Of a DNA stretch of 64,000 nt, positions 15,350 through 20,635 are shown piece by piece. How positions within the stretch are numbered: the stretch's first letter is position 1; every line of letters starts with the position of its first letter. A model generated the notes under the pieces. The model made no database searches. It saw nothing but the letters and a program-made list of their open reading frames with translations, and was not told where the DNA came from. Location: the NCBI GenBank assembly GCA_964036045.1, contig OZ038379.1, positions 21,700,001 through 21,764,000 of the forward strand. Direction: 5' to 3'. The DNA comes from Eutreptiella sp. 'Long Island Sound 2002'. Taxonomy: Eukaryota; Protista; Euglenida. A program made the translations under genes and the position numbers.

Positions 15350-15853
15350 AGCCGCTGGCATGACGTCGTCCATGGTAGACATGACCACGGGCTCAATAGC
15401 ACTGTCCAACTCGGGACTGGCGATTTGAAGTGCAACCTGCACAGGGTGCAGACCAAGGAAGACCCCTTCCACTCATCAGTTGTCTGGAAAACAAGAGGCA
15501 GGGCCACCATGTAAGGGCGGTTCAGGCCAAACTCTCGACGGCCTTGGGGTGGTCCTGACGGGCGGAGCCTCCAATCAAGCGAAACCAGTCAACGAAACAA
15601 CTCCATCCACCAGGCACTGTCCTGCGGAGAAGAAGTACTTGTTGAAGTCGAGACCGCCAGCGAACACGGGAATCACCTCGCAACCACGGCTCTCGAACTC
15701 CTGGACAACGGACACGTACTGAGCATCGTCCTTGGACACCAAGTGGGATCGCTGCAACACCAAACCAATGATAGGACCATCCTTCGCCAGCTCAGGGCGA
15801 GAGTTATTCCACTTGTTGTAAGCGCGTCGGTGAACATGTTTGGCGCCAGAGGG
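15350..15853 (-). pseudogene. chlH: chlH pseudogene, piece D (downstream of the insert)
   Basis: PLAPNMFTD / YNKWNNSRPELAKDGPIIGLVLQRSHL...VIPVFAGGLDF...VDGVVSLTGFA / RQDHPKAVESL / YMVALPLVFQTTDEW / LGLHPVQVALQIASPELDSAIEP; at least 4 frameshifts. Confidence 0.9.
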
Positions 15854-16699
15854 CAAAAATCTAGCGTTGATCTATTGCCGTAGCAATCTGCCGTAGGGCC
15901 ACGAGGAAAATCCTTTCCTCTCGCAATAGGGCCCCGAGTGGACCGGCATCTGTTTTGTTTTGCATGCTTTGCACCGTGGAAGGGACCGTAAACTGTAGTT
16001 TCCGTAGAAACTGAAGTTTAATACATTCCCTGGAGCTGCTGTTGACTGTGCTTTTATGGAGCATGCATATGACCCCTTTTCACGCTTAGTCAATTTTCAT
16101 AAGCGAAATGGAGGGTCCCACCCAACCTCCCTTCGGACAGTGTCTATCCCTTGAGATGAGGGACTTTGAACTCGACCAGCGGCGCTACGAAGAGTGCTGC
16201 GGGGCCCCAAGTGGACTGGCATGTGTTTTGTTATGCATTCTTTGCACTGTGGAAGGGAGCGTAAACAAGCCCGTGAGGTCACCTTCAATTATAGTACTTG
16301 GACGTGATATAGCACTTGGAGAGGATGCTGGATTGGCTCCCTCGGCCTTGATCATGATACCGAGGTCCAACATCAGCAATGCTTGCTTGAGGTCACCATG
16401 ATGGGGGGAAAACAACATGGATACATCACCTCTGCCGTCTTGAGGTCCCATGGTGGGGAGAAATCAGCCTAGGAAAGAGTGGATGTGGCGGAATTGAGCA
16501 AAAAAGTGTGAAAAGGGGTGGAAATGGGTGAAGCTAGGTGAGAATCCAAAAATGCCATATCCCCAATGTAGAAGAAGTATCAAAACCTACCCTCAAACAA
16601 CAGTGATGCCCCCCTAGTATCACAAAGTATGGGTCTCTAGTATGGCCACGCACCCAAATAGTTGCACTGCGCATGCACTGCGCTAAGTGCGCCCCCCAT

Positions 16700-16940
16700 A
16701 TATAGTGGGCTTGTTGGCAGTGCAAAGTGCCCCATGCCCATATATAGGGGGCTGTTTGGCAGTGCAAATTGCTCCATAGGGGGCTTTTTGGCTGCACAGA
16801 GTGTCCCCGTGCCCATATATAGGCAGTGCAAAGTGTCCCCACGCCCATATATAGGTCTTTTTGGCAGTGCAAAGTGTCCCCATGCCCATATGTAGGGGGC
16901 TTTTTGGCAGTCCAAAGTGTCCACTACCAAAAAGACCTGG
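16700..16940. repeat. About 42-bp minisatellite, about 6 copies
   Basis: TTGGCAGTGCAAAGTG(T/C)CCCATGCCCATATATAGG units. Confidence 0.85.
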
Positions 16941-18115
16941 GCATACACTGCCAAAAAGACATGTGGGCCTTGTGCAATTTTCTTGGGCCTACAGGATTTG
17001 GGCTTGGAGCCTGCGTGGTGGATCTATATCTTGAAGTCCATAAGTACTCATGGACCCATACCTTATGGGCGTATAGTAGATGGTCACAACTACGTTTTTC
17101 CCCAGGTGTCTCCCTCTACCATGCATAGAGAGCAGAGATGTTGAACAAAACGGCGCCATTTGGGTCATTTTTGTCCCCACGGGCTACTGCGAGAACCTTG
17201 GGGCACTCATGCCTTCATTGTTTCCCCTTGCCGCCAATCCTCCATGCTGTGCACTTGTGTGTGCGATGAGACGGTGTGCTAATCGGGGTCCGGGGGAGGG
17301 GGGTCGAGCTGACCTGGATGATATGGAGTGAGATACGAGTGAGATTTGCAACCCAAGCCAGCCTATGAAACATTCGACAGCCCATGTGGGTGAACTCAAG
17401 GCAATATTCAGCACTGGTTTGGACAATGATGAGCGATGACCTATGGCCTGTGTCACGGGGGTCGTAGCTCAGTATCTGTTGCTTCACAGCCCCGCCCCTG
17501 CGCAACCATGGGCTTGTCCAACCACAGGGATCTCGTCGGACCGCATTTTTCTGAACCTGTGTTTTGGCGGACAAGAGAAACAAGAATTCAATGGCGCAAA
17601 GGAACTCCGCAATTTATAAACAGAATATTGAGCATCACAACTGGCACGATGTTACATTCAAGAGACGGTGATGAAAATGTGCTTGGTGTGTGTGTTGTGT
17701 GCGCCATTCAGGCACATGTTGCCGGGGCATGGACTGATGGGCTTGTTCAACCACGGAGACCCCATCGGCCTGGTGCTTTGCCCGTGATTGTGCAAAGGGG
17801 GGAGGGGTGCATTTGGTGGTTCAGTGGGTGGGTGCTTGGCTGAACCGTCCCCCCCCCCCCTCCCACATGTAGTGCCTTCTGTGAGGGCCCCAAAGTGGAC
17901 TGGTGCGTCCTAGATTCCAACCTGTCACTAAGAAAACACATGGCGTTCAGCCGTTGTGTGCCCTGTTTGATGTATAACTGGGCTGCGCATCAGAGGTCGA
18001 TGGGAGCACAATTGATAATGAAACTGCGGTAGTATCTGGGCTGCACCCCATTATGCCCCCATCCTCAATCACTCCCTCACACTGTCCCCTCATTTTGTTT
18101 CTATGCAGGTGTAAC

Positions 18116-20146
18116 ATGGTTCCTCAATTGCCTTTGGAAGTGTGGGATGTCATTGCCGACCTTGTTCACTCAGATGTACTGAGTCAAGTTTGTCAAAAGC
18201 TAAGGAAACTGCTTGGGACTCATCGTTATGTGAAGTTGAGGTGCACTGGAGAGAATTTGCAGCGAGTACTGGGACTCATTGGGAATCTACGCTCTCTGCA
18301 GCTCGATCTTGGTGGAAATTCCGTGGGAGAGAGTGGGGCACAGGCGCTTGCAGCGCTGAAGGATGCCCCCTCACTGCATACCCTGTCCCTCGATCTTGGG
18401 GAGAATTCCGTGGGAGACAGTGGGGCACAGGCGCTTGCAGCGCTAAAGGATGCCCCCTCACTGCATACCCTGTCCCTCAATCTGAGGTGGAATTCTGTGG
18501 GAGAGAGTGGGGCACAGGCGCTTGCAGCGCTGAAGGATGCCGCCGCACTGCATACCCTGTCCCTCAATCTGAGGTGGAATTCTGTGGGAGAGAGTGGGGC
18601 ACAGGCGCTTGTAGCGCTGAAGGATGCCCCCTCACTGCACACCCTGTCCCTCATTCTTCGGTGGAATTCTGTGGGAGAGAGTGGGGCACAGGCGCTTGCA
18701 GCGCTGAAGGATGCCCCCTCACTGCATACCCTGTTCCTCGGTCTTGGGCGGAATTCCCTGGGAGACGGTGGGGCACAGGCGCTTGCCGCGCTGAAGGATG
18801 CTGCCTCACTGCATACCCTGTCCCTCGATCTTTGTGGAAATTCCGTGGGAGAGAGTGGGGCACAGGCGCTTGCAGCGCTGAAGGATGCCGCCTCACTGCA
18901 TACCCTGTTCCTCGATCTTGGGTGGAATTCCGTGGGAGGCAATGGGGGACAGGCGCTTGCAGCGCTGAAGGATGCCCCCTCACTGCAGACCCTGTCCCTC
19001 GATCTTTGTGGAAATTCCGTGGGAGACAGTGGGGCACAGGCGCTTGCAGCGCTGAAGGATGCCGCCTCACTGCATTCCCTGTCCCTCAATCTTGCTGGAA
19101 ATTCCGTGGGAGGCATTGGGGCACAGGTGCTTGCAGCGCTGAAGGATGCCGCCTCACTGCATACCCTGTCCCTCGAGCTTGGGCAGAATTCCGTGGGAGA
19201 CAGTGGGGCACAGGCGCTTGCAGCGCTGAAGGATGCCGCCTCACTGCATACCCTGTTCCTCGGTCTTGGGTGGAATTCCGTGGGAGGCAATGGGGGACAG
19301 GCGCTTGCAACGCTGAAGGATGCCCCCTCACTGCATACCCTGTCCCTCGATCTTCGTGGAAATTCTGTGGGAGAGAGTGGGGCACAGGCGCTTGCAGCGC
19401 TGAAGGATGCCCCCTCACTGCATACCCTGTCCCTCGATCTTTTTGGAAATTCCGTGGGAGGCATTGGGGCACAGGCGCTTGCAGCGCTGAAGGATGCCCC
19501 CTCACTGCATAGCCTGTCCCTCGATCTTTTTCAAAATTCCGTGGGAGGCATTGGGGCACAGGTGCTTGCAGCGCTGAAGGATGCCGCCTCACTGCATACC
19601 CTGTCCCTCGAGCTTGGGCAGAATTCCGTGGGAGACAGTGGGGCACAGGCGCTTGCAGCGCTGAAGGATGCCGCCTCACTGCATACCCTGTCCCTCGAGC
19701 TTGGGCAGAATTCCGTGGGAGACAGTGGGGCACAGGCGCTTGCAGCGCTGAAGGATGCCCCCTCACTGCATACCCTGTCCCTCGATCTTCGTGGAAATTC
19801 TGTGGGAGAGAGTGGGGCACAGGCGCTTGCAGCGCTGAAGGATGCCCCCTCACTGCCTTCCCTGTCCCTCAATCCTGCTGGAAATTCTGTGGGAGGCATT
19901 GGGGCACAGGCGCTTGCAGCGCTGAAGGATGCCCCCTCACTGCATAGCCTGTCCCTCGATCTTTTTGGAAATTCCGTGGGAGAGAGTGGGGCACAGGCGC
20001 TTGCAGCGCTGAAGGATGCCGCCTCACTGCATACCCTGTCCCTCAATCTTGCTGGAAATTCTGTGGGAGAGAGTGGGGCACAGGCGCTTGCAGCGCTGAA
20101 GGATGCCCCCTCACTGCATACCCTCGTCCTTACTCTTGACGATTGA
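18116..20146 (+). CDS. Intronless F-box-like / RI-type leucine-rich-repeat protein, 676 aa, 21 x 29-aa LRRs
   Basis: Acceptor TTTCTATGCAG at 18108 and ATG at 18116. N-terminus LPLEVWDVIADLV...LSQVCQKLRKLL is F-box-like. The 87-bp repeats at 18287-20113 match LxxLxLxLxxNxVGxxGAxALA. Confidence 0.85.
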   Translation: MVPQLPLEVWDVIADLVHSDVLSQVCQKLRKLLGTHRYVKLRCTGENLQRVLGLIGNLRSLQLDLGGNSVGESGAQALAALKDAPSLHTLSLDLGENSVGDSGAQALAALKDAPSLHTLSLNLRWNSVGESGAQALAALKDAAALHTLSLNLRWNSVGESGAQALVALKDAPSLHTLSLILRWNSVGESGAQALAALKDAPSLHTLFLGLGRNSLGDGGAQALAALKDAASLHTLSLDLCGNSVGESGAQALAALKDAASLHTLFLDLGWNSVGGNGGQALAALKDAPSLQTLSLDLCGNSVGDSGAQALAALKDAASLHSLSLNLAGNSVGGIGAQVLAALKDAASLHTLSLELGQNSVGDSGAQALAALKDAASLHTLFLGLGWNSVGGNGGQALATLKDAPSLHTLSLDLRGNSVGESGAQALAALKDAPSLHTLSLDLFGNSVGGIGAQALAALKDAPSLHSLSLDLFQNSVGGIGAQVLAALKDAASLHTLSLELGQNSVGDSGAQALAALKDAASLHTLSLELGQNSVGDSGAQALAALKDAPSLHTLSLDLRGNSVGESGAQALAALKDAPSLPSLSLNPAGNSVGGIGAQALAALKDAPSLHSLSLDLFGNSVGESGAQALAALKDAASLHTLSLNLAGNSVGESGAQALAALKDAPSLHTLVLTLDD

Positions 20147-20214
20147 ACGCGAGAGACTGGGGCACAGGCGCTTGCAGCACTCATGGACAGCAATGCAATT
20201 GCTCCATGCTGATT

Positions 20215-20635
20215 GGTGCCAGATGCCCAGGGCAGGGTACACGTACCGATCGGTCAGAATGACAAGAAGTTCTGAAGGTTGTCGGAAGAACCACCCAACC
20301 AGTACTGGAAGGACAACACGAAGTTCCTAGTGCCTTGTTGTTTGGCATGTCCTTCAAGAGCTTTGGCAGAGTCCGCACAGTCTTGAGCATGGCAACTTGG
20401 AAGGATGCACCCTGCTCTTCCTTCTTCTTCGTGAAGTCGCTGTTCGCGCTCTTGCTCTGAACCAGATTGCTTGTTGAGGCGCACGACTTCTGGCAGGGAC
20501 GGGAACACATGCGCAACGTCCAACTGGTCACGGACAGGCTCAACAGCCTCAACGACCTTCTGCGCAAGGTCTCCCTGAAAGAACACCCAAAAAAATGTTG
20601 GCCTCTGCGCAGTCCTGCTTGAATGACCTTCACTG
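20215..20635 (-). pseudogene. chlH: chlH pseudogene, piece C
   Basis: FKQDCAEANIFLG / DLAQKVVEAVEPVRDQLDVAHVFPSLPEVVRLNK / QSKSANSDFTKKKEEQGASFQVAMLKTVRTLPK / RNFVLSFQYWLGGSSDNLQNF / TDRYVYPALGIWH; several deletions and frameshifts. Confidence 0.9.

Follow-up and report, generated by a model that had tools for sequence, protein, structure and literature searches.

An 87-bp coding minisatellite in a leucine-rich repeat gene of the euglenid Eutreptiella, with variation clustered in five codons of the repeat unit

A stretch of 64,000 nucleotides from the euglenid Eutreptiella sp. 'Long Island Sound 2002' (assembly GCA_964036045.1, contig OZ038379.1, positions 21,700,001 to 21,764,000 of the forward strand; hereafter the window, in whose positions all coordinates are given) contains at 18116–20146 an uninterrupted gene for a leucine-rich repeat (LRR) protein, most of which is a coding minisatellite. 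Twenty-one tandem units of exactly 87 bp, nearly identical even at silent sites, each encode one LRR of the ribonuclease inhibitor (RI) type, and the differences between them crowd into five codons. On balance, we think that the gene is probably an intact copy of a euglenid-specific family in which the LRR array is shuffled by unequal crossing-over and the codons of the predicted binding face are, or once were, under diversifying selection. The protein would thus consist of a short, divergent F-box-like N-terminus, a cap, a solenoid of 29-residue RI-type LRRs and a decayed last unit that supplies the stop codon, as follows.

18116–20146, plus strand: open reading frame (ORF) of the LRR gene, from the ORF list, with ATG at 18116, 676 codons and TGA at 20144–20146
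18116–18235, plus strand: F-box-like N-terminal region (residues 1–40), with a motif conserved in 35 family members
18224–18301, plus strand: N-terminal cap (residues 37–62), one strand-helix-strand leading into the array in the AlphaFold2 (AF2) model (strand 38–42, helix 45–53, strand 60–64)
18302–20128, plus strand: 21 exact 87-bp units, each one 29-residue RI-type LRR (tandem repeat search, 87-base cutting, Pfam and AF2)
20129–20189, plus strand: decayed terminal (22nd) unit with the stop (…LTLDD-TGA), plus 43 bases of family 3′ flank, from the alignment of paralogues

Repeat anatomy, variable codons and fold

Tandem Repeats Finder (TRF) reported a single array at 18302–20129 with a period of 87, 21.0 copies and 90% matches, and cutting the sequence every 87 bases from 18302 yielded 21 in-frame units with zero indels, which bears out the 21 exact repeats described in an initial annotation of this DNA. 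The units differ from one another by 9 bases on average and follow the consensus L-[DNGEI]-L-x-x-N-S-V-G-x-x-G-A-Q-A-L-A-A-L-K-D-A-[PA]-S-L-H-T-L-S, where x-x at positions 4 and 5 is a hypervariable di-residue. Its succession along the array, listed in that annotation as GG, GE, RW, RW, RW, GR, CG, GW, CG, AG, GQ, GW, RG, FG, FQ, GQ, GQ, RG, AG, FG, AG, was reproduced exactly. In the register used here, the variable positions then numbered 5, 7, 9–10 and 15–16 are unit positions 29, 2, 4–5 and 10–11, respectively.

Variation across the 21 units affects 33 of the 87 base positions. Amino-acid entropy is 1.4–2.2 bits at codons 2, 4, 5, 10 and 11 and at most 1.0 bit at all others, among which codons 23, 27 and 29 are moderately variable. 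Nucleotide diversity amounts to 0.378 over the 15 bases of the five codons, as opposed to 0.048 over the other 72 bases and 0.051 over the third positions of the scaffold, so that silent and other sites of the scaffold are equally uniform. The five codons hold 62% of the total diversity, a share that was reached in 13 of 100,000 shuffles that redistributed the per-site diversities at random and scored the five most diverse codons each time; uniform mutation is therefore rejected. Entropy and the shuffle test thus agree with the earlier claim that variation is concentrated at a few positions, position 29 (the former position 5) being only moderately variable, and the near-invariance at synonymous sites and the frequent multi-nucleotide swaps among the variable codons (codon pairs include GGT GGA, AGG TGG, TTT CAA, TGT GGA and GCT GGA) were also found as described. 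A free surface over a constrained core was considered as an explanation and rejected, since silent sites in the scaffold would then have diverged as far as the free codons, whereas the third positions of the scaffold stand at 0.051 against 0.378, a roughly sevenfold difference.

For the whole protein, Pfam reported LRR_6 alone (E = 7e-46; 151 bits against a cut-off of 23.4; 12 stretches). AF2, run on alignments of the family, predicted one five-residue strand and one twelve-residue helix per unit, with a mean predicted local distance difference test (pLDDT) score of 82.5 for residues 1–150 and of 88.4 at full length, where the predicted template modeling (pTM) score was 0.87. The repeated 29-residue unit, the LRR_6 match above the gathering score and the strand plus helix in each unit place the protein among RI-like LRR proteins. 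Its neighbors in sequence and fold are ribonuclease inhibitor, NOD2, NLRP1, axonemal LRR proteins and the LRR domain of RipG4 (GALA), and the best sequence matches in PDB had E values of 1e-17 to 1e-14. Foldseek searches against PDB and the Swiss-Prot models matched the LRR part alone and returned nothing for the N-terminus.

The predicted strand is formed by unit positions 27–29, 1 and 2; positions 4 and 5 come directly after it, before the conserved Asn, and positions 10 and 11 lie in the loop preceding the helix. In LRR solenoids, alternate strand residues (here 27, 29 and 2) and the loop that follows face the concave side and the rim, which is the usual ligand face. Structure prediction and LRR geometry would accordingly place the variable residues on the exposed concave β-strand surface, where the initial annotation had put them. 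Binding of nucleic acid by this face was considered and set aside on inspection only, position 2 being most often Asp and the scaffold not being basic. Within the array, the full-length model shows a single low-confidence break, at residues 272–296 (approximately 18929–19003), in the eighth unit with GW and GGNGG (LDLGWNSVGGNGGQ…), which may be a real kink or the model's avoidance of ring closure.

We used the silent sites of the scaffold as a neutral yardstick, which assumes an even mutation rate. Non-synonymous divergence at the five variable codons is 0.33–0.39, four to seven times higher than the synonymous divergence (pS) of the scaffold (0.05–0.10). Because it exceeds the silent rate of the scaffold, the variable codons appear, given an even mutation rate, to have diverged under diversifying selection, and the simplest cause would be selection, present or past, on what the surface binds.

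Paralogous arrays and their turnover

The 8,031 bases around the gene are 100% identical to contig ctg10954_42x_l of the European Nucleotide Archive (ENA) assembly ERZ25074135, on which the public record calls the same 676-aa product. At least nine further loci of that assembly have the same scaffold, and those examined, L001 to L009, are therefore paralogues in one genome. Because these loci were located by way of fragment-sized gene calls, the sample is skewed towards broken copies; the whole-protein search missed the window's own protein and the long ORF fragments on record and is uninformative on intact close paralogues. A search with the first 200 residues gave many more matches on large contigs of ERZ25074135, nine of them at 83–91% identity.

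As had been anticipated, the paralogues share the scaffold (the same 87-bp unit, approximately 88–91% identical to the window) and differ in their di-residues and in the length of their arrays, which ranges from 3 to 46 units. From L001 to L009, the regular 87-base units number 19, 14, 23, 3, 13, 9, 18, 46 and 9, to which L009 adds a second, partial copy of 3 units, and the spacing of 87 bases is broken by four indels in all across the nine loci. The decayed terminal unit with its TGA occupies the same place in L003, L005, L007 and L008, while the TGA lies 4 bases earlier in L001, owing to a deletion, and two codons later in L009. Pooled with those of the window, the 178 units comprise 165 different DNA sequences and 32 di-residues, the commonest being GQ, GG, RG, FG, CG, WW, GE, GR, RW and RA; the same five codons vary most, followed by positions 23, 27 and 29.

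Summed word depth in read data agrees with hundreds of units in the genome. Scaffold bins reached 22,000–54,000 in run X1 and 40,000–112,000 in run X2, compared with 130–250 and 40–140, respectively, in the unique flanks, an excess of two to three orders of magnitude in three runs, and the bins of locus-specific units (18604–18720 and 19189–19305) stood at the level of the flanks; such depth is not a copy number. The reads were used as short Logan contigs, which are too short to span the array and have no DNA or RNA type on record.

Blocks of units recur within and between the arrays. In the window, a 158-base stretch at 19099–19256 is repeated exactly at 19534–19691, so that the end of unit 10 and the whole of unit 11 return at the end of unit 15 and in unit 16, in agreement with the initial annotation. 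The non-adjacent repeats that it gave as identical, 11 and 16 as well as 13 and 18, differ by 1 and 2 bases, respectively, when cut in the register from 18302, the differences lying in the part that the earlier register assigns to the next unit. About half of all units have a counterpart at another locus that resembles them at least as closely as any unit of their own array does. At L008, 42 of the 46 nearest neighbors lie within its own array, and the 46 units (L008:5400–9485, on a 22x contig) form higher-order blocks in which …LNLWWN, LNLGEN/LHLGEN, LDLFGN, LDLCGN… recur; this array is a recent internal expansion.

Variable sites do not assort freely. Codons 27 and 29 are linked to codons 2, 4 and 5 of the next unit (SLC is followed by LNLWW ten times and TLF by LDLFG five times), and codon 2, the silent choice between TCC and TCT at codon 7, and codons 10 and 11 also correlate with the di-residue. 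Judged from these linkages, the exchanged item appears to be a strand-sized cassette and not a free residue pair.

Units with premature stops recur as well, both within arrays (units 4 and 16 of L003 differ by 4 bases, units 3 and 12 of L005 by 6) and between loci (unit 4 of L001 and unit 28 of L008 are 2 bases apart, the sharing being due either to descent or to inter-locus conversion). Copying of units thus continued after a stop had arisen, so that turnover operates at the level of DNA. Of the seven premature stops, three convert the same scaffold Gln, at codon 14, from CAG to TAG (L001 unit 4, L002 unit 6 and L008 unit 28). The 87-bp units would be long and similar enough for unequal crossing-over and gene conversion, both within an array and between dispersed loci; such recombination would duplicate, delete and reorder units in blocks and would keep the scaffold nearly identical even at silent sites. 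We infer that this is the mechanism of turnover. The cassette shuffling suggested earlier gains support from the 158-base match and from the paralogue arrays, in both of which blocks of units recur.

Several features of the paralogous loci deserve mention. L009:2756–4309 is an intact short paralogue (331 aa, 9 units), and the second, partial copy, which starts within the N-terminal region, follows 327 bases later; the pair is a local tandem gene duplication. L001 lies on ctg7185_65x_c (46,758 bases), whose name ends in '_c' and gives 65x, while the other contigs end in '_l' and range from 18x to 42x; if 'c' stands for circular, this contig could represent extrachromosomal circular DNA, or else a tandem duplication that the assembler joined into a circle. 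ORFs with matches to RVT_1, RNase_H or zf-CCHC occur within a few kb of paralogues (L002:2173–3886, L002:9430–9858, L005:9949–10188 and L008:3982–4188), and those of L002 and L008 are situated just upstream, in the same orientation, ending near the breakpoint that corresponds to window position 17265. Outside this genome, run X5 (organism B) contains the scaffold at a depth of approximately 500–950 and a diverged N-terminal region that shows 15 differences over 333 bases, with nothing on the chlH flank, which indicates that the family is present in another strain or species. Estuary metagenomes and metatranscriptomes (runs X9, X11, X7 and X12) hold 6–14% of the sampled words of the gene as short scaffold pieces of 95–100% identity; organisms with the scaffold therefore occur in estuaries, where it may be transcribed. 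Our literature search found no paper on this euglenid family.

N-terminus, host intron and integrity of the gene copy

The N-terminus had been annotated as an F-box. Residues 1–40 carry the motif LP.E.W..IA..L....LSQVC..L...L, conserved in 35 relatives, and sequence comparison makes it fairly likely that this is a divergent member of the F-box group. When the 35 relatives were scanned singly, PF00646 was found in 8, PF12937 in 7, PF15966 in 5 and PF18511 in 3, all below threshold yet as the top families, with best E values for the F-box clan of 0.001–0.004. The Eutreptiella relative P0136 bears the UniRef name 'F-box domain-containing protein', and the best named language-model cluster for residues 1–62 is F-box (score 0.89, a lead only). 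An hhalign comparison of the family alignment with two Pfam-positive F-boxes (P0070 and P0202) brings LP, I, FL and VC into register with a 3-residue gap, in a weak match (E = 0.006, probability 6%). AF2 places helices at residues 7–18, 20–23 and 27–33 with low confidence (pLDDT 54–61, below 50 in the full-length model). A search with the N-terminus among proteins of 372–1183 aa found no relatives; the exhaustive search without a length limit gave 26 clusters. The F-box assignment therefore survives in part: this protein itself has no Pfam F-box match, and it is the sub-threshold matches of its relatives and the weak in-register alignment that make the assignment likely. Should the F-box prove genuine, the family would encode rapidly evolving substrate receptors for SCF (Skp1–Cullin–F-box) ubiquitin ligases.

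The gene lies, on the plus strand, inside an intron of the minus-strand gene chlH and is thus antisense to its host. The features of this setting are the following.

18070–18108, plus strand: pyrimidine-rich tract (C-rich, then T-rich) ending in CAG at 18106–18108, read directly from the sequence; candidate spliced-leader trans-splice acceptor
17265–20189, plus strand: segment approximately 90% identical to paralogous loci (blastn against L001–L009, all-against-all)
20190–20215, no strand assigned: 26 bases absent from all paralogues, which separate the truncated LRR copy from the chlH exon; on the minus strand, the host intron begins with them
15853–20215, minus strand: host intron of chlH (Mg-chelatase H), approximately 4.36 kb, with no GT-AG ends; …GIWH ends at 20216 and PLAP… resumes at 15852

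The start Met at 18116 is homologous to the start of the N-termini of the family, including that of the Eutreptiella relative P0131 (EukProt/MMETSP record), and the CAG of the candidate acceptor ends 7 bases before it. Outrons of Euglena gracilis have a C-rich tract plus CAG at their trans-splice acceptors (PMC11170887), and the fit to this form suggests that 18070–18108 may serve as a trans-splice site. We took the gene as 18116–20146 because the acceptor-like tract precedes this ATG and the relatives start at the homologous Met; the longest ORF, from the ATG at 18053, was rejected, as it is not recorded as a gene product and begins upstream of the putative acceptor.

All paralogues share sequence with the window from about 200 bases upstream of the ATG, some from 17265, and L007 back to 16217. 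Downstream, the window copy departs from the family sequence after 20189, 43 bases past the stop, where the paralogues share at least 135 further bases. The copy is a segmental one that breaks off at this point, and it sits in antisense orientation in a non-conventional intron of chlH. A weak Pfam match to DUF3479, a domain that occurs in ChlH/CobN, was found in the flanking minus-strand gene call. In run X1, one contig joins GIWH directly to PLAP, with the intron missing and 9 loose letters, GCGCCAGAG, ahead of 20215; it represents either spliced mRNA or an allele without the insert. Elsewhere in the same intron, 16685–16922 consists of 41–43-bp tandem repeats with reverse-oriented relatives in L003, L004, L005 and L009; these are a dispersed repeat unrelated to the LRR units.

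A number of observations weigh against an intact family member with a binding face under selection. Among the nine sampled paralogues, seven are interrupted by premature stops or frameshifts, another ends after three units and one, L009, is intact; with a lesion density of 0.07 per unit, the probability that an array of 21 units escapes damage by chance is 0.23, a figure that derives from the biased sample. The ratio of non-synonymous to synonymous divergence (pN/pS) is 0.8–1.2 within the five variable codons, a value that says little either way when five codons are saturated and change by multi-step paths, and for the scaffold it stands at 0.89 within this gene and at 0.59 over all units, which points to little purifying selection on the scaffold since the units spread. 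No protein at least 83% identical came from a transcriptome source in the protein searches, and the gene was absent from the organism's own RNA runs, the only RNA matches being scaffold pieces of 44–83 bases in estuary metatranscriptomes. For the N-terminus, the Pfam scan of this protein yielded no F-box match even at E = 10, which leaves it outside the F-box profiles, and the profile of the family N-terminus retrieved no F-box chain among PDB sequences. The activity of this truncated, antisense, intronic copy is accordingly doubtful, and the working repertoire that the initial annotation had envisaged found no support, given the broken paralogues, a scaffold pN/pS of 0.6–0.9 and the lack of any transcript seen from the near-clonal subfamily.

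The broken paralogues, the appreciable chance of an intact array, the scaffold pN/pS and the lack of a close relative from a transcriptome source would be expected if the recently amplified segmental copies were now neutral and the window copy were an unexpressed pseudogene that is in frame by chance, the clustering of variation having been inherited from a functional ancestral array. The copying of stop-bearing units, the loss of the family 3′ flank after 20189 and the retroelement ORFs adjoining several copies also fit such a decaying relic. We nevertheless hold it to be the less likely account, if a serious one. The sample of paralogues is biased to fragments and still includes at least one other intact copy, the 331-aa ORF of L009; more distant members of the family have EukProt records with transcript-style names (EG_transcript_6890, EG_transcript_7540, GGOE01063448 and a Eutreptiella MMETSP record); and the excess of divergence on the binding face over the silent sites of the scaffold would still require either past selection or targeted mutation, even if all copies were now decaying.

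Less probable again, and in our view unlikely, is that a large, recombining set of F-box-LRR genes gives euglenids a recognition repertoire that changes quickly, directed for instance at viruses or at bacteria inside the cell, with new specificities arising as β-strand cassettes are shuffled within and between loci and with the broken copies acting as a reservoir of donors for the intact ones. We give even less credence to a programmable repertoire, in which each repeat would read one target element through its di-residue, in the manner of transcription activator-like effectors (TALEs) or PUF proteins, and the cell would diversify the arrays by directed cassette recombination. Near-identical units with few variable codons, a limited and recurring di-residue alphabet (GQ, GG, RG, FG, CG, WW and others) and unit numbers from 3 to 46 among the loci are what such a system might produce. 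However, the di-residue correlates with positions 2, 7, 10–11, 27 and 29, so that whole-strand cassettes vary and the sites are not independent; the fold is that of a common RI-type horseshoe, and every solved relative found engages a folded partner with its concave face; no bank of donor cassettes is present, all 21 scaffold matches of the 64-kb window lying inside the gene; and many copies are broken. The per-repeat code of the initial annotation is thus not supported, and cassettes of this kind amount to ordinary variation of an LRR surface. Finally, mis-assembly of the length or order of the array is the least plausible account, in spite of the fact that ERZ25074135 is the same assembly and lends no independent support and that short-read contigs cannot span the array, as the units differ by 9 bases on average at a spacing of exactly 87 throughout, the locus-specific bins have flank-like depth in runs X1 and X2, and nine other loci show the same 87-base spacing.

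Comparison with known systems

LRR surfaces under diversifying selection underlie innate recognition in both plants and animals as well as the variable lymphocyte receptors (VLRs) of lampreys; in nematodes and plants, fast-evolving families of F-box adaptors have been suggested to act as immune-like systems. A euglenid family in which LRR diversification and F-box adaptors were combined would be a new setting in which to study how recognition surfaces diversify, although the many broken copies limit the weight of this case, and expression of the present copy remains putative. The array itself is a minisatellite visibly gaining, losing and reordering units and would be a natural example of a scaffold-plus-variable-patch design; its location offers a clean case of a complete gene copy lying antisense inside a non-conventional euglenid intron.

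The closest structural kin are the RI-like LRR proteins (RNH1, NOD2/NLRC3/NLRP and axonemal proteins), with which the array shares the unit of 28–29 residues, the LxxLxLxxN strand motif, the G..GA..LA helix motif and the strand plus helix per unit. It differs from RI in that its 21 units are approximately 90% identical in DNA and all 29 residues long, whereas RI alternates diverged units of 28 and 29 residues, and the N-terminal partner domain is a different one. FBXL proteins, plant F-box-LRR proteins and the Ralstonia GALA/RipG proteins have the same overall plan, with a short N-terminal LP..E..I..L…VC motif followed by an LRR solenoid, and RipG4 in particular has the GA.ALA helix motif in common, its LRR domain being the top Foldseek match (sequence match E = 2e-14). 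Positive selection on some GALA repeats has also been reported (PMC2244805). However, FBXL and GALA repeats are of the CC type with 24–26 residues (PMC2244805). The 29-residue RI-type units described here fall outside the 24-residue GALA repeats, the F-box-like region lacks a Pfam match and is 3 residues shorter in the alignment, and GALA proteins are bacterial effectors, unlike the product of this nuclear euglenid gene. The LGR family of Protochlamydia amoebophila provides another parallel, with 5–18 concatenated RI-like LRRs of 28 residues that are ascribed to adjacent concatenation in a recently duplicated family (PMC2216083). It is bacterial and without an F-box-like N-terminus, and hypervariable contact codons set against a scaffold identical at silent sites are not a reported feature there.

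Two likenesses drawn in the initial annotation proved loose. The germline VLR gene is incomplete and flanked by banks of donor LRR cassettes, whereas here the ORF is complete and every scaffold match of the window belongs to it; a VLR-type system is consequently not supported. In TALEs, residues 12 and 13 of each repeat read one base of a linear target. The likeness, offered as analogy only, extends to near-clonal repeats with a hypervariable residue pair; here, linked cassettes are displayed on a curved, protein-binding face with no code evident, and this linkage does not favor an independent two-residue code. The pattern of variation is better matched by PRDM9 and other tandem zinc-finger arrays, in which in-frame units of 84 bp are nearly identical at silent sites, vary at the contact codons and turn over by unequal recombination. 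Fold and ligand are different, and turnover in PRDM9 has been shown between alleles of one locus, whereas the evidence here comes only from comparing paralogous loci, many of them broken, within a single genome. Nevertheless, the Eutreptiella array has the hallmarks of the PRDM9 type, namely in-frame units of a fixed length (87 bp), near-identity at silent sites and variation focused on the predicted contact codons (nucleotide diversity of 0.378 versus 0.051).

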